Below, piece by piece: positions 35,328 through 53,399 of a stretch of 64,000 nucleotides of DNA (position 1 is its first letter; every line of letters begins with the position of its first letter). The notes under the pieces were generated by a model. The model did not search any database. It was not told where the DNA came from and was given only the letters and a program-made list of their open reading frames with translations. The stretch is from Obrimoposthia wandeli (lineage: Eukaryota), in the NCBI GenBank assembly GCA_977020255.1, contig CDROCS010000506.1, positions 3,410,001-3,474,000 on the forward strand, written 5' to 3'. A program made the position numbers and the translations under genes.

Positions 35328-35464
35328 TTCTCAGCAGACCTTCAAAGGAATTCGCCTCGCATTAATTGGCGTAATCAGAGAAGAAAATATTAAGTAGTCA
35401 TGAGGCGTTAGCGTAGGGCTTGCTGCATGAATACTGGAATTAACTACAAGTATTGGGGTTTACC

Positions 35465-36889
35465 ATGAGTTTACTATTAATTGCATTAATCGCCATATTT
35501 ATGAGCTTTTATGTTTTGTTATCTCGCTTGAAATCAAGTAAGAAAAGTTTTAATTACCGCGTGCTCACAGCGTTATTCGGTGGCCTGCTATTTGGTGGGG
35601 CGATACAGCTTACAGTGGGTGTTAACAGTGATGTAAATCTGCAATTTGCTGAGCTTATTTCAATTTTTGGTAGTGGCTATGTCAAGTTATTACAAATGAT
35701 TGTTATCCCATTGGTACTTGTTGCCATGACAGCCTCCATCATGAATGTAGAAGGTGATGGCGCATTATCAAAAATAGCACCCAAAATCATCGGCACACTC
35801 ATCTTTACCGTCGTTATTTCTGCGTTGGTTGGTATTGCGAGTATTTATGTGTTTGATATCGATGCCAGCAGCCTAGTCAATGTGATGGGCAGTAACAGTG
35901 CAATAGAGGCGCGTAACAGTACCTTACACTCAACGCAGCATCTGGTGGCAAACAACAGCATAAGCAATCTTTTATTATCAGTCATCCCTGCGAATGTTTT
36001 TGAAATGCTAACCGGATCAGAAAGAACTGCAACCTTGTCTACCGTGTTATTCGGTATGTTTTTGGGCTTTAGTATTCTGCAGGTTAAAAAACGTAAACCT
36101 GAGAAGGTGCAGAGTTTTGTTGATTTCATTAATGCAGCAAAAGAAGTGGTGTTATCAATGGTTCGCGAGATCCTTAAGCTCACACCTTATGGCGTATTTG
36201 CGCTGATGACAAAATTCATGATGAGCAGCGACCTTTTTGCCTTGGCTGAAATGGGACGTTTCTTGATCGCAAGTTATACCGCTATCGGCGTCATGTTCTT
36301 GGTTCATCTGGTATTAGTTGCACTGTTTGGCTTATCTGCGAAAAAATTCGCACAAAAAATCTGGCCTGTTTTAGTGTTTGGTTTTGGCTCGCGTTCAAGC
36401 ATGGCTGCAATTCCACTGAATATAGAAACGCAAACGCAGCGATTGGGCGTTGATGAAGAAACTGCCAACATGTCAGCGACGTTTGGTACCAGCATTGGTC
36501 AAAATGGATGTGCAGGCATCTACCCTGCAATGCTCGCTATTATGGCCGCACAAGTGATGGGTATTCCTGTTGATTTTGGCTTTGTCTTACAGCTTGTCTT
36601 TGTTATCGCCATTGCCTCATTTGGTATTGCGGGTGTCGGCGGCGGTGCAACATTCGCTGCGGTTGCAGTGCTTACCATTATGGGTTTAGACATCACGGTA
36701 GTGGCTATTTTAGTCTCTGTTGAAGCCTTAATCGATATGGCGAGAACAGCACTTAATATCTCAGGTTCTATGCTGTCTGGTGTCATCACTGCTAAGCGTA
36801 ATGGTTCGCTGAATACTGAGTTGTACGCTTCGTCAGAAACGCTTGCTGACCGCGAACGTCATCATTCAACTAACGAAATCAACGCTTAA
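35465..36889 (+). CDS. tcyP: L-cystine:cation symporter (TcyP/YdjN, DAACS family)
   Basis: GYVKLLQMIVIPLV, RSSMAAIPLNIETQ, GQNGCAGIYPAML, GVGGGATFAA and IDMARTALN. Confidence 0.85.
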   Translation: MSLLLIALIAIFMSFYVLLSRLKSSKKSFNYRVLTALFGGLLFGGAIQLTVGVNSDVNLQFAELISIFGSGYVKLLQMIVIPLVLVAMTASIMNVEGDGALSKIAPKIIGTLIFTVVISALVGIASIYVFDIDASSLVNVMGSNSAIEARNSTLHSTQHLVANNSISNLLLSVIPANVFEMLTGSERTATLSTVLFGMFLGFSILQVKKRKPEKVQSFVDFINAAKEVVLSMVREILKLTPYGVFALMTKFMMSSDLFALAEMGRFLIASYTAIGVMFLVHLVLVALFGLSAKKFAQKIWPVLVFGFGSRSSMAAIPLNIETQTQRLGVDEETANMSATFGTSIGQNGCAGIYPAMLAIMAAQVMGIPVDFGFVLQLVFVIAIASFGIAGVGGGATFAAVAVLTIMGLDITVVAILVSVEALIDMARTALNISGSMLSGVITAKRNGSLNTELYASSETLADRERHHSTNEINA

Positions 36890-36926
36890 CAGTCTTGAAC
36901 AAACACTTTATACGAGAATAAACATA

Positions 36927-38324
36927 ATGAAAATTGTAATTTTAGGTGGTAGCGCAGCGGGCATGAGCTTTGCTGCCAAATACAAAAGAAACCAACCAGA
37001 AAATGAAGTTATCGTAATAGAAAAACGCAGCTACCTTTCATTTGGCGCGTGTGGTTTGCCGTATTTTGTTGGCAATCAATTCGATGATACCGAGAGAATG
37101 ATCTCTCGGACACCAGCTCAAGCGATGGATGCGGGGATCGATGTTCGTATCAATACAGAAGTTGTTGCTGTCGACCATATCGCTCAATTGGTTACGATGA
37201 AAGGTGCCAATGGACAAGAGCAACTCCATTACGATAAATTAATTATCGCAACGGGGGCTCGTCCGATTGTGCCCGATTTTAACGACTATTCGGCGGCTAA
37301 TAATAAAGAAACATACAACCCTGAGCATGTTTATACGCTAACAAGCATGGAAGATGGTATCGCCGTCAAACAAGCTTTACAGCATCAAGACAAAAAGAAG
37401 GTTGCCATTATTGGCGCTGGCTTTATTGGTTTGGAAATGTTCGATGCCGCGTATGACTTAGGCAAAGCAGTAACACTGATTGAGCGTGAACCACATATAA
37501 TGAGTCGGCAATTCAGCCCTGAAATGATTGATGTGGTAGAAGATGCTATTCGAGACACCGGCACTGCGTTAATGACGGGGACAGAGGTTAAGTACATTCG
37601 CGATAATGGGCGTGGCGGTTATCTGATCTCAACCCGTACTTTATCAACGAATAGCCCCTCAACAAGCACTCCCTCGGAACAACAAAGTGCTGATGTGGAG
37701 GCCGATATCATCATTTTATCATTAGGCTTTAGACCGAATACAGAACTGTTTGATTTGCCCAAACTCAGTAACGGTGCACTGCTCGTTGATCAGTTTGGGG
37801 CGACACCGATGGCCAATATTTATGCTGTAGGCGATTGCGCCACCGTTCACCATCTTATCTTAAATGAACCGGTATATTTGCCGCTCGCGACGACGGCGAA
37901 TAAGCAAGCACGTATGATGGCTGACAAACTAGCAGGCAAGGAAGTGTTTTTAAATGGCTTCTTAGGGGCGGCATCGTTAAAAGTATTGGACTTTGAACTG
38001 GCGAGTACAGGCGTTTCACAATCGCTTGCCGAGGAATATAAGATCCCAGCTACCACATCAGTGATCAATGATAAAAACCAAACTGATTATTATCCAGGGC
38101 AGGAAGATATTAAGATTAAGTTGGTTTATCACCCTGAATCTAAGGTTTTGTTGGGGGGAGAGATAATCGGTAAAAAAGGCGCGATAGGGCGACTTAATGC
38201 GCTCAGTGTCGCGATGACCGCTAAGATGACCACCAACCAATTAGGGTACTTGGACTTTAGCTATGCGCCACCCTTTGCGAGAACATGGGATGCGTTAAAT
38301 GTTGCGGGTAATGTAGCGAGGTAG
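36927..38324 (+). CDS. CoA-disulfide reductase / NADH oxidase-peroxidase family flavoprotein
   Basis: GGSAAG, single redox Cys in SFGACGLPY, ATGARP, GAGFIGLE, YAVGDCA and DFSYAPPF. Confidence 0.88.
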   Translation: MKIVILGGSAAGMSFAAKYKRNQPENEVIVIEKRSYLSFGACGLPYFVGNQFDDTERMISRTPAQAMDAGIDVRINTEVVAVDHIAQLVTMKGANGQEQLHYDKLIIATGARPIVPDFNDYSAANNKETYNPEHVYTLTSMEDGIAVKQALQHQDKKKVAIIGAGFIGLEMFDAAYDLGKAVTLIEREPHIMSRQFSPEMIDVVEDAIRDTGTALMTGTEVKYIRDNGRGGYLISTRTLSTNSPSTSTPSEQQSADVEADIIILSLGFRPNTELFDLPKLSNGALLVDQFGATPMANIYAVGDCATVHHLILNEPVYLPLATTANKQARMMADKLAGKEVFLNGFLGAASLKVLDFELASTGVSQSLAEEYKIPATTSVINDKNQTDYYPGQEDIKIKLVYHPESKVLLGGEIIGKKGAIGRLNALSVAMTAKMTTNQLGYLDFSYAPPFARTWDALNVAGNVAR

Positions 38325-38371
38325 CCGAAACCATTAATCATGTACGTTATCGTTAATTTTTTGTATTTTTT

Positions 38372-38396
38372 TGCATCTTTTCTGATTTTTTCCGTC
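38372..38396 (+). promoter_or_regulatory. Putative ECF promoter of the gshA-ABC operon
   Basis: TGCATC-N15-CGTC(TT). Confidence 0.65.
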
Positions 38397-38424
38397 TTCA
38401 TTATTAAAGCCGTTTAAGTGAAGT

Positions 38425-40038
38425 GTGAAAATGATAAATACTGAAATAAAATACTCTGAAATTGATGTGGTTTCTTTCTTGAGTAAAGACAATGTTAAAG
38501 CCTCTCTGGTTGATATCCGCCGTGGTATCGAAAGAGAGCTAGTCCGTACAACACCACAAGGTTCGCTTTCTGCATCGCCGCATCCTAAAGCGTTTGGATC
38601 TGCTTTGACGCATCCGAGTATCACAACGGACTTCGCCGAAGCGCAATTAGAATTGGTTACACCTGCAATGAATGACAGGCAGGCTATGTTTAAAACGCTG
38701 GGTAATTTACATCATTTTGTTGCGACTCATATGCCAGCGAATGAAACCCTGTGGGGAGCGAGCATGCCGCCAGTGCTACCAGATGAAAGCATGATCACGA
38801 TTGCTGACTACGGTAGCTCAAATGCAGGTCAGCTGAAAATGCGTTATCGCCATGGTTTGGCGAACCGTTACGGCAAGAATATGCAGTTAATTTCTGGTAT
38901 TCATTACAATTTTTCGCTTCCTGAATCGTTTTGGAAAGCGTTGCACAGCTATACACAAAACCCCGTAGAGCTAAGTGAATTTATCTCGGAGCGTTACTTT
39001 CACCTCATTCGTAATGTGAGCCGTCATGGTTGGGTGATCCCGTACTTGTTTGGTGCCTCACCTGCCGTCGATCACAGCTACAACCCCGTAAATGAGCATA
39101 AGCTCGATAAGCACGATGATAAAACCCATTACCTGCCTTGGGCGACTTCATTACGCCTGAGTAATATGGGATACAGTAACAGTGAGCAGTCGTCGCATCC
39201 GGTGAGTTTTAACAGCAAATTGGCATTTTTAACCGACCTGCACCAAGCACTGACAAAGCCAAGTGAGCGCTACAAACACCTTAATACTGAGAAGCAACTT
39301 AACGCTTCTGTCTTGCAACTTGAAAATGAGTTGTACGGTTTAGTGCGCCCAAAAATTGTGAGTGAGGAACAGCGTCCTTTAATGGCAATGTGTCATCACG
39401 GTGTGCAATACATCGAGCTGCGTAGCCTAGATAATAATCCTTATTTACCACTGGGGATCAGTGAAGAGCAAAGTCATTTTTTGGATATCTTCCTAACTTA
39501 CTGTGCGCTGGCACCAAGTGCTGACATTACCGATGAAGAACAAGTTTTAATTGCTCGCAGGCAGGAATTGGTTGCTACTCAAGGACGTAAACCGGGCTTA
39601 ATGCTACCCACTTTACAAGGAGAACGCTCCTTAGTGGCACTTGGCGAGGAACTGTTAGCGGCGATGAATCCGGTTGCGAATATGTTTGACAGTGCCTTTG
39701 CTACGGATGTTTACGCCAAGGGCGTTGCGCAAGAAAAAACTAAGTTTAGTAACGCTGATCTGACGCCATCGGCGAAGGTATTGACTGATATGAAAAAATA
39801 TCACCTTAGCCATACGGCTTTTGTGCAACAACTTTCTGATTTGCACATGAAGCAACATGTTGAAAACGCGATTGAGCAAGAAGACATGGATAACTTGATA
39901 ACACTGGCATCGGGATCCTTGCTAGCTCAAGCGGAAATGGAAGCGCAGCAAGAGGTCAGTTTTGACCAATTTATCCAACAGCATAACCGCTTGCAGTGTG
40001 ACGGTGAGCAGCAGAAGGTAACGGTTAATTACTCATGA
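38425..40038 (+). CDS. gshA: Glutamate--cysteine ligase
   Basis: RRGIERE, TTDFAEAQLELVTP, SGIHYNFS, SLRLS, QLENELYGLVRPK and YIELRSLD. Confidence 0.92.
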   Translation: MKMINTEIKYSEIDVVSFLSKDNVKASLVDIRRGIERELVRTTPQGSLSASPHPKAFGSALTHPSITTDFAEAQLELVTPAMNDRQAMFKTLGNLHHFVATHMPANETLWGASMPPVLPDESMITIADYGSSNAGQLKMRYRHGLANRYGKNMQLISGIHYNFSLPESFWKALHSYTQNPVELSEFISERYFHLIRNVSRHGWVIPYLFGASPAVDHSYNPVNEHKLDKHDDKTHYLPWATSLRLSNMGYSNSEQSSHPVSFNSKLAFLTDLHQALTKPSERYKHLNTEKQLNASVLQLENELYGLVRPKIVSEEQRPLMAMCHHGVQYIELRSLDNNPYLPLGISEEQSHFLDIFLTYCALAPSADITDEEQVLIARRQELVATQGRKPGLMLPTLQGERSLVALGEELLAAMNPVANMFDSAFATDVYAKGVAQEKTKFSNADLTPSAKVLTDMKKYHLSHTAFVQQLSDLHMKQHVENAIEQEDMDNLITLASGSLLAQAEMEAQQEVSFDQFIQQHNRLQCDGEQQKVTVNYS

Positions 40039-41813
40039 ATATACTTTGGAAATTACGTGGCTATATAAAAATGTTTGCTCGGCAGTACATTATCGCCATT
40101 TTGGTACTGCAAATCGTCGCCTTGTTAAACCTGTTACCGTCTTGGTTGATAGGTCGGATTGTTGACAGTATTAGTGCTGGGGAATTAACTACGCGTTTAT
40201 TACTTATTCACCTCGCTGGCATTTTACTTTCTGCCCTTGCTATGTATGGCTTGCGGTATGTTTGGCAAAGCAGACTGTATGGTGCATCGGTTGCGATTAC
40301 CAAGGTGATGCGCAGTGAACTGTTTCATAAATTCACCGTACTTTCGCCATCATTCTACTCTCGCCGTAGCCCTGGTGATTTAATGGCGCATGCGACCAAT
40401 GATCTTAATGCGGTAGAAGAAGCAACCGGTATGGGCATCATGACGTTTGTGGACTCTTTGATTGCGGGTTTTACCGTAATTTTGGGCATGATTTTGGTTG
40501 TTAGTGGCGAGCTTACCGCGGTTGCTCTTTTGCCGTTTCCTCTGTTGGTCTACATTACGCATCGATATGGTACCAACCTGCATAAAGCCTTTGGCCGTGC
40601 ACAAACGACCTTTTCAAATTTGAATGAAGAAACTCGAGAAACTGTTTCTGGTATTCGTGCCGTTCACTCGCATGGTATCAATCAACGTCAGGAACAGCGT
40701 TTTGGTAAAGTATTGGACGATACGTTGGATGCAAACTTGTCGGTGGCTAAAGTAGACGCTGCGTTTATTCCAACGATTCAACTGTTTTACGGTTTGTCAT
40801 TTGTTATTTCACTTGGTTATGGTGCTTTGCTGATTAGCCAAGGCAACATTACCGTGGGACTGTTTACAACGTTTACGCTTTATCTTGGTCAGTTGTTGGG
40901 GCCATTTATGCAATTCGGTTGGCAGTTCAATGTATTTCAACGAGGCAGCATCTCATGGCAACGGTTGGAAAGCCTTTTCTCGGAACAACCAGAAGTGTTG
41001 GAAGGGAAAGACACTTTACCTAAGGATGCAAACGCGAATATAGCGATCAATATTAAATCGTTTACGTATCAAGGCGCAAATCGACGTGCGCTACAAGACA
41101 TCAAACTGGATATTCCTGCAGGAGGGTTAATCGGTATCACAGGCCCTACTGGCGGCGGTAAAAGTACCTTGTTGCAACTGGTATTAAGGCAATTCCAATT
41201 GGACTCGCAATCAAGTATTCGTATTGATGGGCATTCGATTGACAGCCTGACCTTTGATTCGATGCGTAGCAAAATGGCATGGGTACCGCAAAAGCCATTT
41301 TTGTTTTCTGGCACTATCGCGGAAAACATCGCATTAGGTAAACCGAATGCTTCAGCGGATGAGATTGCTCATGTTGCTGAAATGGCGGGCATCACAGATG
41401 AAATTGAAGCCATGCCTGAGGGATTCAATACTGTACTGAGAGAGGGCGGAACCAATCTTTCTGGCGGTCAGAGACAGCGACTTACTCTCGCCAGAGCTTT
41501 ACTGTCTGACGCTGACATTCTGCTGCTCGATGATCCGTTCAGTGCACTAGACATGAAAACGGAAGTGATTGTGCGCCGGAACCTGAAAAAGCATTATGGA
41601 CATAAAACGATGGTATTGATTACGCAGCGATTACCAAACTTGATCGAAGCAGACCAAATTCTGGTGTTGAACGAAGGCCAGATTGAAGAACGAGGATCAC
41701 ACCATGATTTAGTCGCAAAGCAAGGCTGGTACTCGTTGGTTTATCAACGTCAAAGTCAGCTGGGTAAAGCAATCAAAGAGAAAGCAACACTTACAGGAGA
41801 ACACTATGCGTGA
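40035..41813 (+). CDS. Type IV ABC exporter half-transporter A (MdlA/SmdA-like)
   Basis: TM domain, GDLMAHATND, Walker A GPTGGGKS, LSGGQRQR and degenerate Walker B LLDD; start overlaps the gshA stop. Confidence 0.9.
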   Translation: MNILWKLRGYIKMFARQYIIAILVLQIVALLNLLPSWLIGRIVDSISAGELTTRLLLIHLAGILLSALAMYGLRYVWQSRLYGASVAITKVMRSELFHKFTVLSPSFYSRRSPGDLMAHATNDLNAVEEATGMGIMTFVDSLIAGFTVILGMILVVSGELTAVALLPFPLLVYITHRYGTNLHKAFGRAQTTFSNLNEETRETVSGIRAVHSHGINQRQEQRFGKVLDDTLDANLSVAKVDAAFIPTIQLFYGLSFVISLGYGALLISQGNITVGLFTTFTLYLGQLLGPFMQFGWQFNVFQRGSISWQRLESLFSEQPEVLEGKDTLPKDANANIAINIKSFTYQGANRRALQDIKLDIPAGGLIGITGPTGGGKSTLLQLVLRQFQLDSQSSIRIDGHSIDSLTFDSMRSKMAWVPQKPFLFSGTIAENIALGKPNASADEIAHVAEMAGITDEIEAMPEGFNTVLREGGTNLSGGQRQRLTLARALLSDADILLLDDPFSALDMKTEVIVRRNLKKHYGHKTMVLITQRLPNLIEADQILVLNEGQIEERGSHHDLVAKQGWYSLVYQRQSQLGKAIKEKATLTGEHYA

Positions 41814-43623
41814 TGCAAAAATGAATCAAGCGAGTGACGCTTCTTTGTTTCGTCGCCTTATGGCTTACTCATTACCACATAAAATGCGTTTTGTGGGGGC
41901 ATTTATGATGCTTGCCATTGCGATCAGTGCTGAGATGGCGATCCCTTGGATCGCTAAGATTATTATTGACGAGGTGATTATACCTCAGCAGTTTGAATGG
42001 CCGTACTTAGCGTCGCTGCTTGGGTTGATCATCTTCGCCTATGTGATCTCTGGATTGTTTAACTATTTGCAGACGGTGTCGTTTAGTCATAGCGCTTTGT
42101 TAATGGTCAATGATGTTCGAAAACAGTTGTTTAATCACGTATTGAACTTTCCTATCAGTGTATTTGATAAACTCGCTGCGGGTAATTTGGTGTCTTACAT
42201 TACTAATGACACCGAAGCTTTACGCAACATGTTTGTGTCGACGATCCCAACCATTATGCAGGGCAGTTTACGTATTGGTGCGATTTTTATCGCTATCTCG
42301 TTATTGGACTGGCGTTTGATGTTGTTGAGTCTGGTGTTGATCCCAATACTGTTGCTGACAATGCATGCTTATCGCAAGATCTCGATGAAAGTGTTTGATG
42401 GCATCCGTGTGCAAATTAGTAACATCAACGGCCAGATTAACGAGTCTTTACAAGGCATGGTATTGATTCAGGCGTTTCGCCAAGAAAAAGCGTTCACTGA
42501 AAAATTTGAGCAAGAGAACAAGCGTTGGTTTGATTTCCGCGAGAAGTCGATTGCAATTGACAGCCTGATGTTGAACCCGTTAACGCGTTTGGTATCGACG
42601 CTTACTGCTGCGGCTATCGTTGGATGGTTTGCTGGTGAATCACTTAGTGTTGTCGTTGAAGTCGGTACTTTGTATGCGTTTTTAAATTATATCGAACGCT
42701 TCTTTGACCCGTTCCGCCAGTTGTCTATGGAACTGCGTAAATTGCAGGTAGCAACCGTGGCATCGAAACGCATTTTTGAGTTATTGGACGATGACTCGGC
42801 ACATCAGTCGCCATCAATGAACATTGTGCCGCTATCAACGCAGCATGATATTGAGTTTCGCAACGTCAACTTTAGCTACGAAGAAGGTAAACAGGTACTG
42901 TCTAATGTGAGCTTTACCGCGAAGGGCGGGCAATCTACAGCGATTGTGGGTCATTCTGGTAGTGGTAAAAGTTCAGTGGTTAACTTATTGATGCGCTTTT
43001 ATCAGCATCAGCAAGGTGAGATATTGGTAGCTGGTCAGCCGATAGGATCACTCCCTGAGGCTCAACTTCGCAAGCTGTTTGGTTTGGTTTCACAAGATCC
43101 AATTATATTCAGCGGTTCGGTGTTGGATAATATTGATTTATCACATGCAATACCAAACAAAGATAAAGCCATACTCGCGGCAAAGCAGGTGAAAGCGCAC
43201 AAGTTTATTGAGCGCTTAACTAATGGTTATGAACATCAGCTTAGTCATGGCGGCGCTTCACTTTCGGTTGGTGAAAAACAGCAATTGGCATTGGCGAGAG
43301 CGATCACTCATGATCCGAGTATTTTCTTACTGGATGAAGCCACTGCTAACATAGACAGTGATACCGAAGAGGCGGTTAAAGAGGCGCTCGAGGGCATCCA
43401 AGATGGCAGAACCGTCATCACGGTTGCGCATCGTTTATCGACTATTCAGAATGCAGATCAAATTCTGGTGATGAATAAAGGCAAAATCGTGCAAAGCGGG
43501 ACGCATGACGAGTTGATCGGCCAAGATGGCGATTATCGTGACTTGTATCTTGCACAAAAAACGCAAGAAGAGAACGAACATCAGAACAGTCTGCTTGGTT
43601 TAGCGCAAGCAACCGCAGCCTAG
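41806..43623 (+). CDS. Type IV ABC exporter half-transporter B (MdlB/SmdB-like)
   Basis: Walker A GHSGSGKS, LSVGEKQ, LLDEATANID and AHRLST. Confidence 0.9.
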   Translation: MRDAKMNQASDASLFRRLMAYSLPHKMRFVGAFMMLAIAISAEMAIPWIAKIIIDEVIIPQQFEWPYLASLLGLIIFAYVISGLFNYLQTVSFSHSALLMVNDVRKQLFNHVLNFPISVFDKLAAGNLVSYITNDTEALRNMFVSTIPTIMQGSLRIGAIFIAISLLDWRLMLLSLVLIPILLLTMHAYRKISMKVFDGIRVQISNINGQINESLQGMVLIQAFRQEKAFTEKFEQENKRWFDFREKSIAIDSLMLNPLTRLVSTLTAAAIVGWFAGESLSVVVEVGTLYAFLNYIERFFDPFRQLSMELRKLQVATVASKRIFELLDDDSAHQSPSMNIVPLSTQHDIEFRNVNFSYEEGKQVLSNVSFTAKGGQSTAIVGHSGSGKSSVVNLLMRFYQHQQGEILVAGQPIGSLPEAQLRKLFGLVSQDPIIFSGSVLDNIDLSHAIPNKDKAILAAKQVKAHKFIERLTNGYEHQLSHGGASLSVGEKQQLALARAITHDPSIFLLDEATANIDSDTEEAVKEALEGIQDGRTVITVAHRLSTIQNADQILVMNKGKIVQSGTHDELIGQDGDYRDLYLAQKTQEENEHQNSLLGLAQATAA

Positions 43624-43725
43624 GCCTCATATGTGGGTAATGCGGCAATCGCACCATAACGAAAAAGCCAAAGTGGAAGACCACTTTGGCGATGCTAAAT
43701 TTATTCGATTATTGTTTTTTGAACA

Positions 43726-45195
43726 TCAGTTGATTAATGTTAGAGAGTCGAGAACGCCTTTACCACTGTGAATGCCGCCTTCATTTTCACTGGCTGGCTT
43801 GCTGCGAATAAGGTAACCGGCATAACCATCGAGTTCTGTAACTGGAACGCCATCGTAATAAGCGGTAAACAAACCGATTTCGCTAACAAGGTCATCGACC
43901 TGTACTTGTGCGTTATCGCGGACCGTTATCGCTGGTACCTCGCGTTCATGCGGGTACAAACGTGACATTAACGCCCATGCGTCATATTCTTCTGGGTTGA
44001 GTTCATTCAATTTATCGCTGATGTCCTCACCAAAAACGCAGTGACCACCACCTTCACCTTGATTCTTTAATACCCACTCTTGTTTATCAGCTTGGGTGTT
44101 AAACCAGGTTATCGTTTCTGGGTTTATAGGCTTCATATCTGCTAACACACTTTTTACCAATTCAGCTTCTACTAGGTTAAGTCCCCAGCGAGCATACTCT
44201 TCGGCAGGCATTACTGTCAGTAGCATCTGCATGGTTTTACTTGTTGCAAGCTGCTGGCTGAACGTAGCATTAACTGCAACATGATGCTGCTCGATAAACA
44301 ATCTTGTTTGACTTAATGTCTGGCAACATACCGGTTCATCTCGCGCTGGAGAGTAGTAATCAGAATACTGATAACCTGCTCGTAGGTACACGACATCGAT
44401 AGCTCCAATGTCTGCTAACATTAAGCGCTGGTTGTCACCAGTTGATAGCTGTGTACTAAGCTGCTCAAACGTACGTCGTACTGTGCGTATACCTTTATGC
44501 TGTAACGCGACTTCAAGTAAATGTTGGTCATAAACATTATCTTCATTTTCTTGGACAACCATCAAGAATGTCGGTTTTGGTTGGGTTGCATCGGTTGTAA
44601 ACGCCGCTTGGACTTTTATCGCTGCTTGGGCAATACCATAGGCGAGCTGTTCCAGTCCTTGATTCTCTGCTGGTGTCGATAAGTTATCTTCAGACCATTC
44701 ACGGTAAACGTTTGGCCATTGATTTTTCATATAAGCGTGAAATTCTGTCGCGCGTTGGCCAAAGGGCGCCATACCGGCAGCAATACCGTTGAACTCAATA
44801 ACTTTGGCACCGTGTTGACGGTCATCCATAAAGTCGGTGCGCATTAACAGTAACGGTTTTCGAGCGGGTGTAAGCCGATGTTCACTATTACCATGAGCCT
44901 GTTGGTGCAGAGATAATAAACGACCGAAAAACGGGTCGGCTTTGGCCATATCTTGTAATGACGATTGTAGAAAATCATGATCTTCCGAGACATTGTTTAT
45001 CAGCTTAGTAATAAGTGGCGTCACTTTGCGTAAATGTTGGAACACTTTACGCTCCATCATCATTGGCGCAATACTAAAAGGGCAGTGTCTGGCGGTGTTA
45101 TCTGCTTGACGAAACGCGACACCATGCATAATGGCCCATTCAGTTGCATCTTGAATCACTTGTTGTGGGATCATTAAGGTTGTTTTGGTATTCAT
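43726..45195 (-). CDS. Glutathione synthetase of the eukaryotic (GSS/GSH2) type
   Basis: RTDFM, IEFN, YLRAGY, VLKNQGEGGG, SEIGLF, GYLIRSK and EGGIHSGKGVLDS parallel eukaryotic GSS motifs. Start placed at ATG 45195 after GGAG. Confidence 0.82.
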   Translation of the reverse strand: MNTKTTLMIPQQVIQDATEWAIMHGVAFRQADNTARHCPFSIAPMMMERKVFQHLRKVTPLITKLINNVSEDHDFLQSSLQDMAKADPFFGRLLSLHQQAHGNSEHRLTPARKPLLLMRTDFMDDRQHGAKVIEFNGIAAGMAPFGQRATEFHAYMKNQWPNVYREWSEDNLSTPAENQGLEQLAYGIAQAAIKVQAAFTTDATQPKPTFLMVVQENEDNVYDQHLLEVALQHKGIRTVRRTFEQLSTQLSTGDNQRLMLADIGAIDVVYLRAGYQYSDYYSPARDEPVCCQTLSQTRLFIEQHHVAVNATFSQQLATSKTMQMLLTVMPAEEYARWGLNLVEAELVKSVLADMKPINPETITWFNTQADKQEWVLKNQGEGGGHCVFGEDISDKLNELNPEEYDAWALMSRLYPHEREVPAITVRDNAQVQVDDLVSEIGLFTAYYDGVPVTELDGYAGYLIRSKPASENEGGIHSGKGVLDSLTLIN

Positions 45196-45282
45196 TATTC
45201 TCTCCAATAAACATGCCGTACTGAATACGTCTAATGTTTTATTTACCACTTGTTTATCATGAATTTGTTTTTATTTTAATAA

Positions 45283-46540: not shown

Positions 46541-46592
46541 TAATCGAGTCACAGGGCGCGATGCGTAATATTATCCTCGGCAACTTGATAAC

Positions 46593-46634
46593 TTTACGCT
46601 CAGATTCAAAAAGTTTACGCTCAGATGCAAAAAG
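46593..46634. repeat. Two tandem 21-bp units TTTACGCTCAGAT(T/G)CAAAAAG
   Basis: 46593-46613 and 46614-46634 differ at one base. Confidence 0.9.
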
Positions 46635-46720
46635 GCGAGCATGATAATGGATCATTTATAATTAAATAAATCCACATCAATGCTCGCCTTTGTTAGCTTA
46701 AATACGCAGTTCTAGACCTG
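46629..46720. repeat. Hairpin repeat copy 2 plus a truncated copy of the guaC terminator
   Basis: 46683-46720 is identical over 38 bp to 51756-51793. Confidence 0.9.
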
Positions 46721-46887: not shown

Positions 46888-47223
46888 CTAATCCATATAA
46901 GTTACAGCTAGCCTGTTGTCTACTAGATGTTTTGCTACCTCGTAGTCTGGATTATATGTGGCAACATTATGCGCAGCCATCCCAATAGCCGAGGCTAGGC
47001 CTAAAACACCTGTTATACCACCAAATAAGCTTCCGCCAGCAGCTGCAACTCTGCCATATGTATAAATACGGCACGAAAGCCCGTTGGTTTCGATTATATT
47101 TTCAATTTTAGATATGGCGCTTCCCATTCTTCCACTGAGTCCAATTATTTCAAATGATTTATGATCTTCTATTAAAGACTTCACTTTATTAGAATCGAGA
47201 TCTTCATATTTTACAGATTCCAT
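46888..47223 (-). CDS. Hypothetical protein with a Gly/Ala hydrophobic segment (island cargo)
   Basis: 111 aa; RVAAAGGSLFGGITGVLGLASAIGMAAHNVATYNPDYEV. Confidence 0.75.
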   Translation of the reverse strand: MESVKYEDLDSNKVKSLIEDHKSFEIIGLSGRMGSAISKIENIIETNGLSCRIYTYGRVAAAGGSLFGGITGVLGLASAIGMAAHNVATYNPDYEVAKHLVDNRLAVTYMD

Positions 47224-47422
47224 TGTTTTTCCTTTTTAAATATTTCGATAATGTCATAAATTTAGTCGTATTTATTTGTATATATATATGTAGCTTTATA
47301 CATGTATAAATACATTAGTTTAAAACTTGTTTAATGTCTACAATATGCAGTCGATTAATGGTAATTAACTGATTTGATTGTTATTATCTTCTATATTATT
47401 TGAATTAACCAGTGGAAATGTA

Positions 47423-48262
47423 ATGTTAAAAAATGACTTGCGTAAATCAGCCTTAGCGAAACTAGAATCAACTGAGAAATCATATAAATCTCAAGCGAAA
47501 TTAATAGAAAAAAACTCTATTAAACTTTTTGAAGTTAGACAACAAAGCAGTGTAGATACACTTGTTGCAATCGAAAATTATATTAATACACTTGCAAACT
47601 CGCCAAAAGAATTTGATAAAGCATTTAATGTATTTAAGGCAGACATAAAAGAGTTCAATAATAAAATTAAAACTCTCAATGAAGAATATGAAAAATCAAA
47701 CATAGGTAAAAGTGGAATCGGTGGTGCGATGGCTGGAGCTGGTGTTGCTATGTTTGCGCCTACTGCGGCAATGGCCGTAGCTACTACATTTGGCGCAGCA
47801 TCTACTGGTACTGCTATATCAGCTTTAGGTGGCGCAGCTGCAACAAATGCTGCGTTAGCATGGCTAGGCGGTGGTGCTCTTGCTGCTGGAGGTGGTGGTA
47901 TGGCTGCTGGTAATACTCTTTTAGCATTAGCTGGTCCTATCGGTTGGGGAATCGGAGCTGTTAGCTTAGCTGGCGCAGGTTTATTTACGCGTAGTAAAAA
48001 TCAAGACATTGCAGATAAAGCCGAAAAAGAAATTAAAAAAATTAGAATTGAAACATCTAAGCTAAAAACGATGAATATTAAAGTGTCGGCTTGTTCTAAA
48101 TTAACAGAGAAGCATTCGTTAGGGTGTTTAGAACTTTGTTGCTTATTGAGAGCTAATGCTCCTAGCGATTACTTGAAGTTTGATGCTGAGCAGAAAGGGA
48201 AACTCGGAGCTCTAATTAACCACATCAACGGATTGTCTTTAATGATCAAAGAACGTATTTAG
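47423..48262 (+). CDS. Coiled-coil protein with a long Gly/Ala hydrophobic hairpin (island cargo)
   Basis: Helical N- and C-termini flank GAASTGTAISALGGAAATNAALAWLGGGALAAGGGGMAAG. ATG 47423 preferred over TTG 47378. Confidence 0.8.
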   Translation: MLKNDLRKSALAKLESTEKSYKSQAKLIEKNSIKLFEVRQQSSVDTLVAIENYINTLANSPKEFDKAFNVFKADIKEFNNKIKTLNEEYEKSNIGKSGIGGAMAGAGVAMFAPTAAMAVATTFGAASTGTAISALGGAAATNAALAWLGGGALAAGGGGMAAGNTLLALAGPIGWGIGAVSLAGAGLFTRSKNQDIADKAEKEIKKIRIETSKLKTMNIKVSACSKLTEKHSLGCLELCCLLRANAPSDYLKFDAEQKGKLGALINHINGLSLMIKERI

Positions 48263-49720
48263 ATGTCAGTACTTAAAGATAAAGTTTCAGTTCAAGATCA
48301 GCTTTTAGCATCATTGTCCCATCAAATGGAAGTCGCTCGTCAACAAGCGATGAACATGGCTATCGAGCACCAAGATAAAGCCCTTTTATTCGCGATTAAG
48401 CAAATTGATGAAGTTAAAGAGCAGCTAAAAGATCCATCCAACTTTTTGGGGCGAATGGATACTAAGCATGGTGAAGTAGCTGAAAAAATCGAAGTTGCAA
48501 TTAGAAATGCAAAGGAAGCACTTAATCAGCAAGTTACAGCTGCACCAGACTTTAGCGCTACCTTTGAAGGCGTTGGGAGAATTGCCCCAGAAGACTACAT
48601 CATCGATGGGGTGGAAGTTCAGTCTAAGTTTATCAATGGTTTAAATAATAATCTAAAGCATGTAATGGACCACATGGAAAAGTATGAGCAATTTGGTCGA
48701 GATGGCTCGTATTATCATATTCCTAAAGATAGTCATCAACAGATACAGAAAATATTAGATGGAGAGTCTGTTGATGGCGTTAAGCTAGCAACTATAAATG
48801 CCGTTAAGGAAAAAGTTCAAGCGATAGAAGCTCTTTCTGGTAAATCATTTAATGAAGTCGTACAACCCGGAAACTCAACATATGACGAAGTACAGTTGTA
48901 TAGAGCGGATGGAACTTTAGATCAGCATAGTACTGATTTAAAAATTGAAAATGATGTGAAAGTAGATGATATAAAATCTGATGATGTATACAAAGAAAGC
49001 CTAGGTGAAATGGGCAACGCTGCTTTAGGCGGTGCAGTGGTTGGTGCTGGCGTAAGCTTTGTTAGTAATGTTTATCAGAAGCATAAACAAGGTAAAAACT
49101 TATTCAAAGGTCAATTTTCCAAATCCGATTGGAAAGAGCTCGGCATTGATATGGGAAAAGCTTCTTTAATTGGTGGCTTCTCTGGTGCTGCTCTTTATGG
49201 CTTAACAAATTATGCTGCGATGTCGGCACCATTCGCTGGAGCAGTGGTTACAGCTTCCAAAGGGATTGGCAGCTTATCAATGCAATATAAGAGTGGTGAG
49301 CTTGAACTTGATGAGTTTATTGATCTGAGTTTGCTCGTATGTGGAGAGTCGGCTGCAGTCGGTTTAGCGTCAATGGTTGGACAAACTCTAATACCAATAC
49401 CTGTAGTGGGTGCTTTAGTTGGTTCGATGGCGGCTAAGTTTTGTATAGATCTAATCAAAAGTTCAGATGAAAAGGTTATCAATGAATTTCAAAAGAGAGT
49501 CAGTGAATTCTCGAGTAGCTTAAACGCGCAAGAACTAAAAGTACTTAAAAGCATTGAATCTAAGTTTGAACATTTAACTAGTATCACTGAAGCTGCATTT
49601 AATGTTGAAAACAATACTAAATTACTGGAGCTTAGTGTTGACCTTGCTCGTGAACATCATGTACCAGAAGATAAAATAATTAAAAGTATCTCAAACTTAG
49701 ATGATTTTATGTTGGGGTAA
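48263..49720 (+). CDS. Coiled-coil / putative nuclease-like / membrane-segment protein (island cargo)
   Basis: Abuts the upstream stop. Contains EDYIIDGVEVQSK (PD-(D/E/Q)xK-like) and several Gly-rich hydrophobic helices ending IPIPVVGALVGSMAA. Confidence 0.75.
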   Translation: MSVLKDKVSVQDQLLASLSHQMEVARQQAMNMAIEHQDKALLFAIKQIDEVKEQLKDPSNFLGRMDTKHGEVAEKIEVAIRNAKEALNQQVTAAPDFSATFEGVGRIAPEDYIIDGVEVQSKFINGLNNNLKHVMDHMEKYEQFGRDGSYYHIPKDSHQQIQKILDGESVDGVKLATINAVKEKVQAIEALSGKSFNEVVQPGNSTYDEVQLYRADGTLDQHSTDLKIENDVKVDDIKSDDVYKESLGEMGNAALGGAVVGAGVSFVSNVYQKHKQGKNLFKGQFSKSDWKELGIDMGKASLIGGFSGAALYGLTNYAAMSAPFAGAVVTASKGIGSLSMQYKSGELELDEFIDLSLLVCGESAAVGLASMVGQTLIPIPVVGALVGSMAAKFCIDLIKSSDEKVINEFQKRVSEFSSSLNAQELKVLKSIESKFEHLTSITEAAFNVENNTKLLELSVDLAREHHVPEDKIIKSISNLDDFMLG

Positions 49721-49941: not shown

Positions 49942-51663
49942 ATGAAAGTTATTAACCCTATAGAACTAGATATTTTAACCGATGGCGAGCGCTATACATT
50001 AGATACAAAACTTAAGAAATTGTTAGCTAATGATGATTGCTTTATCTATGTTCAACCAATAATAAATAACATGAAGCCAGACTTTATTGTTATTGGTAAA
50101 GAGTTTGGAGTTTTAACTATAGAGGTTAAAGATTGGAGTGATGATTATGTTTTATCTGCAAATCCACAAGTTGTTACCTGTGTAGATAAAAAGTATAAAA
50201 ATCCAATTTCACAAGTTAGCACTTATTCGAGTATCATCCGTAGTAAATTAAATGGAGTTTTTGATTTTATTGATGAGCAGGGGGATTTAACGGTTCCTGT
50301 AAAATCTGTAGTCTTTTATGTTAACTTAACAAGTGATGCGGTAACTAAGCATTCGCATCTAGTAAGCAATGATGTTGCGGTTTATAATAAAAGAGATTTA
50401 CGTCATCTATCTTTAACTGATTTTATTACGCCGAGCGATGTTTATTTATCGGATAAAGAACTCTTGGCTGTTCGTGGTGTTTTATTTCCCGAAATTGTAA
50501 TCCCAAGTGATAATCCTATTTCTAATGATGAATTTTTAGAAGTCGTAGATATTCGAGCGTTAGACTACGAGCAAGAAGAATTTTCTAAAAAAGTTCCTAA
50601 TGGACACTACATGGTTTCGGGAATACCGGGTAGTGGGAAAACGGTTATATTACTATCTAGAGCCCTGCATCTAGCACAACATCACAATGATTATAAAATT
50701 ATCATTCTTACTTATACAAAAGCGTTGTCTAATAAATTAAAGCATCAATTAGCTCTTAAGGCTAAAGAAATGCAAATTGATAATAAGGCTTTAGATAGAA
50801 TTGAAATTAAAAACTTTCATAAGTTATGTTATGACCTTGTAGGCAGTCCTGCCTATAGTAAGGGAAAGAAAGATGACGTTTATTTTAATCAATTTTGGCC
50901 AAGAGAAGCTATCCTCGCTGTTAAAAATAACCCTAAATATGATGCCGTGCTTGTGGATGAATACCAAGATTTTCATGCAGACTGGTTTGAGCTTTGTCGT
51001 GAAATTTGCAAAAAGAATTCGAATGGCGAAGAACATTTATTTTTTGCGGGTGACAGATTACAAAGAATTTATGATGTGACTTGGAACAGCTATAAAGAAA
51101 TAGGAATTAATATTCAAGGTCGAAGTAAGTTACTGAAAACACCTTATCGAACAAATCAAAATCATTTAGATTTTTCATTAAAGTTCCTTTCATTAAATGA
51201 GGGGTTAGCGAAAGATATAGGTAATTTTTATGAAATCGAAAAGTTAAATAATTTTTCTGTTTCTAGGGATAACATAGACCTATTAGCTGGTAATACCTCA
51301 TCACTATTAAAATATATTGAGGAATTAGTTATGAGTCTTGATATTGCTCCTGAAGATATATTGATTCTATGTCATAAAAATTACGAGTGTTCTCAAATAC
51401 TAAAAATGATGCCAGAGAATATAAGTTGTAATTTTGTATCTGGTAAAGAACCTATGAAAGGAAAAGGACTGATTACAACGTATCACTCATCTAAAGGACT
51501 CGAAGCTAAATATTGCATTTTGTTCAAAGTAGAAAATTTTGAAGTGGACAAACAAAATAGAACTTTAATGTATGTTGGTATGACTAGAGCATCTGAAAAA
51601 TTAATTATTAACTATGAGTATAATAAAAATTTCGCTGAAGATATTACGGATATGTTGTCATAA
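49942..51663 (+). CDS. NERD nuclease fused to a superfamily 1 (UvrD-like) helicase
   Basis: PDFIV...IEVKDW, Walker A GIPGSGKT, Walker B VDEYQD, GDRLQRIY, YRT, TYHSSKGLE and YVGMTRA. Confidence 0.85.
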   Translation: MKVINPIELDILTDGERYTLDTKLKKLLANDDCFIYVQPIINNMKPDFIVIGKEFGVLTIEVKDWSDDYVLSANPQVVTCVDKKYKNPISQVSTYSSIIRSKLNGVFDFIDEQGDLTVPVKSVVFYVNLTSDAVTKHSHLVSNDVAVYNKRDLRHLSLTDFITPSDVYLSDKELLAVRGVLFPEIVIPSDNPISNDEFLEVVDIRALDYEQEEFSKKVPNGHYMVSGIPGSGKTVILLSRALHLAQHHNDYKIIILTYTKALSNKLKHQLALKAKEMQIDNKALDRIEIKNFHKLCYDLVGSPAYSKGKKDDVYFNQFWPREAILAVKNNPKYDAVLVDEYQDFHADWFELCREICKKNSNGEEHLFFAGDRLQRIYDVTWNSYKEIGINIQGRSKLLKTPYRTNQNHLDFSLKFLSLNEGLAKDIGNFYEIEKLNNFSVSRDNIDLLAGNTSSLLKYIEELVMSLDIAPEDILILCHKNYECSQILKMMPENISCNFVSGKEPMKGKGLITTYHSSKGLEAKYCILFKVENFEVDKQNRTLMYVGMTRASEKLIINYEYNKNFAEDITDMLS

Positions 51664-51729: not shown

Positions 51730-51793
51730 AAAGGCGAGGCAATAATTAAATTGTTCTCGCCTTTGTTAGCTTAAATACGCAGTTCTAGACCTG
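51730..51793. repeat. Hairpin repeat copy 3 (short-loop variant)
   Basis: AAAGGCGAG...CTCGCCTTT-GTTAGCTTAAATACGCAGTTCTAGACCTG. Confidence 0.85.
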
Positions 51794-51808: not shown

Positions 51809-52849
51809 TTATTCTTTACCGAATACGTTGTTTTCTTGCTCAAGTACACGGATAAAGGTAGTACGCTTGCTTAGCTCTTTTAATGAAGCTGCGCCAACGT
51901 ATGTACAAGTAGAACGTACGCCACCTAGGATATCAAAAACAGTGTTTTCGATTGGACCACGGTAAGGAACTTCTACAGTTTTGCCTTCTGAAGCACGGTA
52001 TTTAGCAACACCACCTGCGTGTTTGTTCATCGCAGTTGTTGAGCTCATGCCATAGAATTTTTTCGTTTTCTTGCCATTAACTTCGCACAGCTCGCCGCCA
52101 CTTTCGTCGTGACCAGCTAACATACCGCCAAGCATAACGAAGTCTGCGCCGCCGCCAAATGCTTTAGCAACATCACCAGCACAAGAACAACCACCGTCAC
52201 CAACAACCATGCCTGAAAGGCCGTGAGCAGCGTCAGCACACTCGATGATTGCAGAAAGTTGTGGGTAACCAACACCTGTTTTAACACGTGTAGTACATAC
52301 TGAACCAGGACCGATACCAACTTTGATGATATCTGCACCAGAAAGAATAAGTTCTTCTGTGATTTCACCAGTAACTACGTTACCAGCCATAATCGTTTTA
52401 GTTGGGTATGCTTTACGTACTTTACGCACGAAATCAATGAAAAATTCTGAGTAACCATTAGCTACATCGATACAGATAAACTGTAAACGCTCATCTAATG
52501 CTAGAACTTGTTGAAGTTTTTCGAAATCTGAATCTGATGTACCAGTTGATACAAAGATGTGGTCAAAGATTTCTTGGTTTGCTTCTAGGAACTCTTTCCA
52601 TTCAGCTACAGTGTAATGCTTATGTACAGCTGTTAGCATTTTGTGTTCAGCAAGTTCTTTCGCTGCTTCAAATGTGCCTACAGTATCCATGTTTGCAGCA
52701 ATAACCGGTACACCTGTCCAAGTGTACTTGCTGTTAGGGAAAGTGAATGTACGCTCTAAGCTTACTTGTGAACGACTCTTAAGAGTTGAACGTTTTGGGC
52801 GGAAAAGTACATCTTTAAAACCTAGCTTCAATTCTTGTTCTATGCGCAT
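51809..52849 (-). CDS. guaC: GMP reductase
   Basis: [54 protein letters not shown] and RASEGK. Confidence 0.97.
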
Positions 52850-53399
52850 GACATCTATCTTCTGTTTGTTTGCACAGGCTCTTATTCTTGGCCGCAATAT
52901 ATAGCAGGCGCAAGGAAAACCCTAAATGAATGGGTTCATGGATGGTACTGTGCAAAAAATTATAAGGATTTTAGTTTAAGCGGTACAAGCGAATCGTGTG
53001 TGCGGGTAAGCCGCGTTTATCCAACGCGCTTATACGGACTGATATTAGTCTAAGGGTCGTTATCTTGTAAAGGCTTTATTTTCATGTGAAGGAGCGATAA
53101 AGGTCATTTCTTGACTTGAAAGTCAGTATTTATGCGGCTCTAGGAGGGATAAATAAAGTTTAAAATAATTGTAACGAGCAAGGGGCAGCATCGGGATGAA
53201 TTCTGAACCGTAAAGATGTTTATAGCTGGCAAGGGCAAGTTAAAAAAGAGAAAGGTAAAAGGCAAAGCTAAAAAAGACCAAGCCCCACAGTATTGAATGC
53301 GAACTGTGAGTGCTTGGCCAAGGGTTTTATTATAAATGACGAACAGGAACCAACTAGCCGCGACAGGCTAGGCTCGTCATTGTTTTACTGGTTACGCTT

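Follow-up and report, generated by a model that had tools for sequence, protein, structure and literature searches.

Two adjacent genes in the DNA analyzed here, a 64-kb stretch that we call the window (positions 3,410,001 to 3,474,000 of contig CDROCS010000506.1 in NCBI GenBank assembly GCA_977020255.1, filed under Obrimoposthia wandeli), are a new Moritella member of PDC-M09, a catalogued family of candidate defense systems. PDC stands for “phage defence candidate,” and the name carries no mechanism. The two genes, called A and B below, lie at the terminator of guaC, and our best explanation for them, to which we give about an even chance, is that they encode a membrane-embedded anti-phage complex with a nuclease-like head. 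A first-pass annotation made from the letters of the window had instead described a three-gene module carried as transposon cargo and had compared it to bipartite pore-forming toxins. The record is corrected on each of these points: there are two genes rather than three, they occupy a hotspot at the guaC terminator rather than a transposon, and they do not encode a ClyA-type toxin.

PDC-M09 was already public as a candidate. What is new is the Moritella member and a first anatomy of the system, from which a function is proposed on the basis of sequence comparisons and structure models. This anatomy comprises an obligate pair of proteins backed by natural fusions, a set of nuclease-type residues conserved more strongly than any other part of the system, and an unusually long, invariant Gly/Ala segment that is predicted to lie within the membrane. 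It yields concrete structural predictions that can be checked, and it applies to a family whose range includes clinical Klebsiella plasmids, Escherichia coli islands, dairy Lactococcus plasmids, and many cyanobacteria.

Genes A and B match PDC-M09 from end to end

Gene A (PDC-M09A; window positions 47423-48262, plus strand) encodes a protein of 279 amino acids (aa), and gene B (PDC-M09B; 48263-49720, plus strand) encodes a protein of 485 aa. Both calls are based on the open reading frame (ORF) and the PADLOC model, and the call for A also draws on its relatives. Protein A matches the PADLOC model PDC-M09A (PDLC04407) with an E value of 3.2e-110, over residues 16-294 of a longer, TTG-started ORF and positions 1-280 of the 282 in the model. 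Protein B matches PDC-M09B (PDLC04409) with an E value of 4e-184, over residues 7-484 and model positions 6-479 of 480. The arrangement is likewise that of the two-gene PDC-M09 cassette, with A followed by B on the same strand and the two abutting. The likeness to PDC-M09 therefore covers both proteins from end to end as well as gene order and adjacency, with no tested difference, and the catalogue entry comes without function, mechanism, or experimental support. The first-pass annotation had been unable to assign these genes to a named family, and a PADLOC search, one of the checks it asked for, supplies the name. Pfam gives no match above its cutoffs for A, for B, or for the divergently encoded 111-aa protein that had been counted as the third member of the module.

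PDC-M09 is one of 145 candidates derived from BREX, DISARM, and type I restriction-modification (RM) loci on the principle of “guilt by embedding,” and its authors describe it as untested (Payne et al., bioRxiv, 10.1101/2024.01.29.577857). In the supplement it appears as cassette CAS_00055, composed of FAM_02775>>FAM_02807, with 380 occurrences in RefSeq (10.1101/2024.01.29.577857).

All three ORFs of the first-pass annotation are present where it placed them, and the last two do abut. The middle one had been listed as 294 aa starting from the TTG at 47378. Because all relatives of A and the PADLOC model begin at the ATG at 47423, we take the product to be 279 aa. The ATG of B directly follows the stop codon of A, leaving a gap of zero. 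Upstream of A is an AT-rich intergenic region between divergent genes (47224-47422) that is presumed to hold the promoter; it contains no convincing match to a promoter consensus, and promoter and terminator scans gave results at or below shuffle expectation. The AT-richness noted earlier is borne out, with a GC fraction of 0.35-0.37 over 45-50 kb and 0.31-0.33 over 50-52 kb, compared to 0.42-0.46 on either side.

A and B form a conserved pair across many phyla

A and B are a conserved, co-oriented, operon-like pair found across many phyla and sometimes fused. A profile search with B recovered relatives in 284 species genomes, from which 80 loci were kept for context counts. In 76 of these 80 loci, the gene immediately upstream of B, in the same orientation, is A. 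Three of the four loci without A lie at contig edges and one (L064) truly lacks the gene, which leaves A adjacent to B in 76 of the 77 genomes where the relationship can be evaluated. A median of 13.5 nt separates the two genes, which overlap or abut in 21 of 70 pairs. Species that carry the pair belong to the Gamma-, Beta-, and Alphaproteobacteria, many Cyanobacteria, and the Bacillota, and the pair was also found on a Fusobacteria plasmid and in a metagenome-assembled genome of the Actinomycetota, for a total of at least seven phyla-level groups. The idea of a multi-component module thus holds for the two abutting genes and fails for the third, since no homologue of the 111-aa gene is present in any of the 80 loci.

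Two natural A-B fusions indicate that the proteins act together. In P0433 (876 aa), the A part is 44% identical (E value of 2e-38), and in P0468 (758 aa), it is divergent (E value of 2e-10). These fusions could in principle be gene-calling artifacts. An exhaustive HMMER search with residues 58-245 of B yielded 237 clusters (50% identity) among 1.84 billion representatives, and nearly all of these clusters share a single architecture of ~480-500 aa. A separate protein, P0496 (1,410 aa), matches the N-terminal domain of B in six stretches.

The pair is an accessory element of its hosts. Among 5,426 complete E. coli genomes, 29 have any match, and 60 plasmids carry B, of which 46 are large Klebsiella plasmids. 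The pair is rare among phages, with one fragmentary record in 50,697 from phage collections and six pairs in 2.9 million IMG/VR contigs.

A word search with an E value cutoff of ≤0.001 returned 7,337 A-like proteins and 489 B-like proteins. This ~15-fold excess may reflect additional partners of A-like proteins or a count inflated by low sequence complexity. Longer A-like genes (368-378 aa) were also seen on high-GC viral contigs, at positions 469-1605 of L101 and 5983-7089 of L103. The first of these clearly has no B downstream, and the sequence downstream of the second is too short to tell.

Protein B is predicted to join a nuclease-like domain to hydrophobic helices

We modeled B with AlphaFold2 (AF2) from a 34-sequence alignment. 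The model has a mean predicted local distance difference test (pLDDT) score of 72, which rises to ~90 over residues 20-240. A long N-terminal helix (residues 3-56) is followed by a second helix (69-87), three short strands (98-99, 112-114, and 117-121), a helix (127-140), a strand (150-153), and then further helices. Residues 58-245 (window positions 48434-48997) thus have the modeled order alpha-beta-beta-beta-alpha-beta, which is the order found in PD-(D/E)xK nucleases. On the strength of the model, we predict that this N-terminal region is a PD-(D/E)xK-like alpha/beta domain.

Conservation within B centers on the residues that such a domain would use. H69, G70, E74, D111, Q120, and K122 are invariant in all 104 full-length B representatives (50% identity clusters), and E71 is retained in 99 of them. 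These best conserved positions of the protein map to the first helix, the start of the second strand, and the third strand. If the model is right, likeness to the PD-(D/E)xK superfamily would include, in addition to element order, a Glu on helix 1, an Asp at strand 2, and, with Gln in place of the usual acidic residue, Q-x-K on strand 3. When positions conserved at ≥90% are counted, 21 fall in the soluble domain, compared to 10 in all membrane segments together. The first-pass annotation had reported a nuclease-like motif with Gly-rich hydrophobic helices after it, and this description stands except for the spacing of the motif, which is D111-x8-Q120-S-K122 rather than the x10 given there.

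The hydrophobic helices occupy residues 246-402 (48998-49468) at approximately residues 250-272, 300-332, and 351-399. They include uncharged, Gly-rich segments of 23, 33, and 29 residues (250-272, 300-332, and 363-391, respectively), and hydropathy peaks at residues 250-271 and 351-399. The AF2 model places a helical region at the C terminus (residues 403-485; 49469-49720 with the stop codon included). Relatives of B show some resemblance to SLATT two-transmembrane effector domains (Pfam PF18142 and relatives) in that their C-terminal hydrophobic helices can be aligned with them. SLATT_fungal matches occur in 10 of the 34 relatives, over the last two hydrophobic helices and the helix that follows. 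The resemblance is incomplete, because the best score (25.6 bits, for residues 352-428 of P0103) lies under the gathering cutoff of 26.5, the matches are confined to those 10 relatives, and B of the window has no SLATT match even at an E value of ≤10. With Pfam at the same threshold, B relatives also produce borderline matches to Gly-zipper, Romo1, and DUF3482 families.

Protein A carries a long uncharged insert between long helices

Protein A has the layout proposed for it in the first-pass annotation, with long helices on both sides of a hydrophobic Gly/Ala stretch. The AF2 model contains four long helices predicted with good confidence (residues 3-56, 62-92, 189-245, and 255-276). Between the second and the third lies an insert (residues 97-189) of 93 residues that includes no Asp, Glu, Lys, or Arg and is 56% Gly plus Ala. 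This insert is almost invariant from Moritella to cyanobacteria.

Apart from PDC-M09A, similarity searches with A returned only weak matches. Among NCBIfam models, A scores 19.5 bits against MakA (E value of 4e-4), for which the cutoff is 320, and 19 bits against alpha-xenorhabdolysin A (XaxA), for which the cutoff is 125. Profile matches to PDB sequences include MakA and an Nhe component (E values of 0.6-0.8); these searches, conducted with both alignments, otherwise gave only coiled-coil and apolipophorin noise. Foldseek aligned the model with the ClyA pore (E value of 1.8, template modeling score of 0.35) and with AhlC (E value of ~1.8). A also matches the PADLOC model for LeoBC with an E value of 3e-6 at model positions 350-527, which correspond to its stalk and paddle part, and a Lactococcus dynamin through 27 Gly-rich residues in the paddle region. 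No GTPase or P-loop match was found in A, and a Pfam search at an E value of ≤10 with every member of the A alignment revealed no consistent family. None of the weak matches suffices to place A in one of these families, and they may be explained by composition.

A variable segment at the guaC terminator

A 38-bp exact direct repeat brackets the region that contains A and B. The left copy (46683-46720; 54 nt match at 87% when extended) duplicates part of the guaC terminator region, and the right copy (51756-51793) is the hairpin region directly 3′ of guaC. The copies are 5,073 bp apart, and the 5.07-kb low-GC segment that they define holds exactly the 111-aa gene (46888-47223, minus strand, from the ORF list), A, B, and a gene for a 573-aa protein with NERD and UvrD-type superfamily 1 helicase domains (49942-51663, plus strand; PADLOC candidate C3a187, E value of 5e-59). 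The conserved core gene guaC itself, which encodes GMP reductase (51809-52897, minus strand), anchors this variable site.

The closest genome, that of Moritella sp. 5, has A and B at the same chromosomal site with 98% and 94% identity, respectively. There, the same repeat pair encloses a 281-aa gene, a 46-aa ORF, A, and B. The slot of the 111-aa gene is thus filled by a different gene, the 281-aa gene, and the NERD-UvrD helicase is absent from this site. Among the 80 A-B loci, only weak matches to the helicase region of this protein were found, in 3 loci. The segment reads as a repeat, a variable slot, A-B, a second variable slot, and the repeat at the guaC terminator. We infer that the 111-aa gene and the defense-like NERD-UvrD helicase gene are independent neighbors that occupy interchangeable slots.

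The pattern is that of a small hotspot rather than of a transposon. No recombinase gene is present within the segment bracketed by the repeats. When ORFs of ≥110 aa were scanned across the 64-kb window, no Tns, tniQ-type, transposase, or integrase domain was detected, and the ORFs with a family match all represent metabolic or housekeeping genes. Moreover, the flanks of the segment are core genes that are syntenic with Moritella sp. 5. The 38-bp direct repeat is the only candidate for an end feature that was seen, although no search aimed at TnsB-type end sites was made. The scan and the core-gene flanks thus speak against the transposon cargo setting of the first-pass annotation, whether of Tn7 or of CRISPR-associated transposon (CAST) type. 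The window also contains no tRNA or Rfam family that might have been an attachment site.

The 111-aa gene belongs to a family of its own

The 111-aa protein has one Gly-rich hydrophobic segment (residues 59-92) and 109 relatives of its own. We examined nine contexts of these relatives, and in the four that were checked for A and B neither gene is present. In Vibrio parahaemolyticus, the relative comes after a fragment of a DRT-like polymerase. The Marinobacter relative resides in an island with an integrase, ParE/Phd, and HsdM, and another on a contig from Logan (short-read assembly) lies beside an AAA_13 ATPase. In Psychrobacter (L088, 6001-10467), the gene has a type I RM system on one side and two genes for dynamin-like GTPases on the other. 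In Sulfurimonas (L109, 4638-10333), it follows a gene for an Xre-type helix-turn-helix (HTH) protein and precedes a TerB-like gene and three dynamin-like GTPase genes. A Shewanella relative sits among insertion sequence (IS) elements and an integrase, and another relative follows a DUF3024 gene on a 1.8-kb Logan contig. Finally, a Pseudomonas relative (L112, 4669-5336) follows an Xre-type HTH gene in a region resembling an integrative and conjugative element, and one more relative follows the same HTH gene on a 2-kb Logan contig.

These contexts, together with its absence from the A-B loci, indicate that the 111-aa gene is a small, mobile single gene of variable islands and not a member of the module, as had been proposed. 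Two of the nine contexts (Psychrobacter and Sulfurimonas) place the gene directly upstream of dynamin-like operons, and in Sulfurimonas and Pseudomonas it is divergent from the small Xre-type HTH gene. There are hints that this small Gly-zipper family is linked to dynamin-type membrane modules. Two candidates for hidden relatives were rejected. Several other 111-aa ORFs near A-B proved to be unrelated chance ORFs, and a 285-aa and 482-aa pair upstream of the 111-aa relative in V. parahaemolyticus that might have been a divergent A-B consists of the DRT-like polymerase fragment and an ATPase-like protein.

A and B keep company with defense genes in other genomes

In E. coli, Enterobacter, Cedecea, and Yersinia, a gene for an HTH-WYL-WCX regulator abuts A on its upstream side and on the same strand (e.g., L005, 8244-9152; L092, 9001-9879). 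In E. coli Z226-5, A-B is part of an integrative island that also contains AlpA, an antirestriction gene, Ag43, and a large SIR2 protein. The copy in E. coli ET729 has IS elements on either side and belongs to an island that contains integrases and a CbtA/YeeU toxin-antitoxin pair. An unannotated 840-aa gene follows B in both E. coli Z226-5 and Cedecea.

The pair is also found on plasmids. On the Klebsiella variicola IncFIB plasmid pKP187 (L089, 8153-17762), the one Klebsiella plasmid examined in detail, A-B is ~3 kb from the tellurite-resistance ter cluster, and a HAD hydrolase gene and a VWA gene are located between the two. The Lactococcus lactis plasmid pSD96_06 (L090, 3585-11241) has a divergent A-B (38% and 31% identity) with dynamin family genes to either side of it and a DUF262 gene close by. 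In the alphaproteobacteria Magnetospirillum and Insolitispirillum (L063 and L080), A-B comes after an HTH-dynamin gene, and McrBC-like genes follow the pair on a Leptolyngbya plasmid.

A scan of the 64 nearest neighbors from 32 diverse loci identified the PADLOC families WYL, LeoA/LeoBC, DpdF/DruE-type helicases, mad2, PbeA, SngC, BrxH, and type I methyltransferase, to which Pfam adds nSTAND, CHAT, and integrase. Overall, and in qualitative terms, A-B is an accessory pair of host genomes and plasmids that keeps company with defense genes. The defense-island setting suggested earlier is therefore seen elsewhere, in loci with WYL, type I RM, McrBC-like, SIR2, dynamin-like, integrase, and IS genes, and is tempered by some housekeeping neighbors.

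A proposed membrane-resident complex and its alternatives

If A and B do constitute an anti-phage system, they would form one complex at the inner membrane, and their soluble portions would be cytoplasmic. Neither protein has a signal peptide, which is why the bundle of helices in A and the N-terminal domain of B are assigned to that side. The head of B would be the effector, a phosphodiesterase that is held at the membrane and acts on invading DNA, and A would use its invariant intramembrane Gly/Ala region to scaffold or gate this head. A system with the same working idea has been described. SNIPE (PD-lambda-1), which pairs DUF4041 with a GIY-YIG nuclease domain, is a nuclease bound to the membrane and defends the cell by cleaving DNA during its entry (PMC13190303). 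In both cases, transmembrane helices would hold a nuclease domain at the inner membrane facing the cytoplasm. No match of B to GIY-YIG, DUF4041, or the PADLOC PD-lambda-1 model was found, and thus B would be an analogue of SNIPE and not a homologue. The two also differ in that SNIPE has one transmembrane helix and B has several Gly-rich helices, and B needs a conserved partner gene. A bolder version, in which A-B is a second, evolutionarily independent form of membrane-resident nuclease immunity whose PD-(D/E)xK-type head is gated by A and which acts in a network with dynamin-like GTPases and the 111-aa family, strikes us as unlikely.

Several observations weigh against an anti-phage complex of this kind. 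Q120 of B occupies the position that is acidic in canonical (D/E)xK motifs, and the B domain has no significant Pfam, NCBIfam, or PDB-sequence match to any nuclease family. Structural comparison is also weak. The best Foldseek match of B is a local one to the Hef nuclease domain (E value of 0.77, probability of 0.82), EcoO109I is matched as well, and the Foldseek searches (both models against PDB, and B against BFVD) returned nothing with an E value of <0.1. The membrane parts of both models are of low confidence, with pLDDT scores of 41-69 for the membrane regions of B and <50 for residues 93-188 of A. The strong conservation of the A insert suggests that it has more than a scaffold role. Furthermore, plain housekeeping genes are also found among the neighbors of A-B, no anti-phage activity has been reported for PDC-M09, and the one further paper that names it, a preprint that describes no test of it, places the PDC-M09 of Streptococcus thermophilus outside defined defense islands.

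The main alternative is an abortive-infection pore, in which the Gly-zipper/SLATT-like helices of B and the insert of A would open or depolarize the inner membrane after a trigger, and the soluble domain of B would be a sensor or a second effector. We regard this explanation as tentative and on the doubtful side. It would account for the SLATT_fungal, Gly-zipper, Romo1, and DUF3482 matches among B relatives, for the near invariance of the uncharged A insert across phyla, and for the weak resemblance of A to MakA, XaxA, ClyA, AhlC, and the LeoBC paddle region, and membrane disruption is a possible output of the pair. However, every one of these matches is under its curated cutoff and could be due to composition, B of the window lacks the SLATT match, and conservation in B is concentrated in the soluble domain rather than in the membrane segments. 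A different kind of pore would be that of a bipartite YaxAB/XaxAB/Hbl-type alpha-pore-forming toxin secreted to act against other cells, which is the least probable of all the explanations considered. The likeness of A to the ClyA family (XaxAB/YaxAB, MakA, Hbl/Nhe, and AhlBC) consists of its long bundle of helices, which has a hydrophobic segment at one end, accompanied by the subthreshold NCBIfam scores, the weak PDB profile matches, and the Foldseek alignments noted above. Those scores amount to 6-15% of the curated cutoffs, the 93-residue hydrophobic stretch of A far exceeds the heads of ClyA-type proteins, and B is predicted to have an alpha/beta nuclease-like fold instead of that of a ClyA-type partner. 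Nothing points to secretion, as signal peptides are lacking and no secretion genes are nearby. Consequently, we have abandoned the YaxAB/Hbl analogy drawn in the first-pass annotation.

The recurring dynamin-like and Ter genes raise the prospect that A-B is not an immune system but a membrane stress or remodeling module that works with these proteins, for instance to repair the envelope. A has a short Gly-rich motif in common with the dynamin paddle and the LeoBC model, dynamin genes are beside A-B in three loci (the Lactococcus plasmid and the two alphaproteobacteria), the Klebsiella plasmid has the ter cluster close by, and several neighbors elsewhere are housekeeping genes. A differs from LeoA/LeoBC dynamin-like proteins in having no GTPase domain, and the similarity is short and Gly/Ala-rich. 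Because PADLOC lists LeoA/LeoBC as a defense system, the dynamin link does not separate immune from non-immune explanations. The patchy, accessory distribution on islands and plasmids and the WYL regulators fit conflict systems, and invariant nuclease-type residues would be unexpected in a repair scaffold, which makes a non-immune role improbable in our view. There is very little to recommend a system of three genes that requires the 111-aa protein as its third membrane component, an arrangement that its distribution largely refutes. The 111-aa gene is divergently adjacent to A and encodes a Gly-rich hydrophobic segment, and dynamin-like genes are found both downstream of two of its relatives and near A-B. 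Nevertheless, none of the A-B loci has a homologue of it, the four contexts of its relatives that were checked have neither A nor B, and in Moritella sp. 5 its slot holds a different gene.

Other features of the window

Just left of the low-GC segment, positions 35453-45249 of the window contain a thiol-metabolism cluster. Its genes encode a dicarboxylate symporter, a pyridine-nucleotide disulfide oxidoreductase, a glutamate-cysteine ligase, two ABC exporter components, and a eukaryotic-type glutathione synthase (PF03917, E value of 7.5e-60). The cluster has no match in the corresponding stretch of Moritella sp. 5. Between this cluster and the left repeat, downstream of a GNAT gene, are two tandem copies of a 21-bp sequence that are 90% identical (46590-46631).

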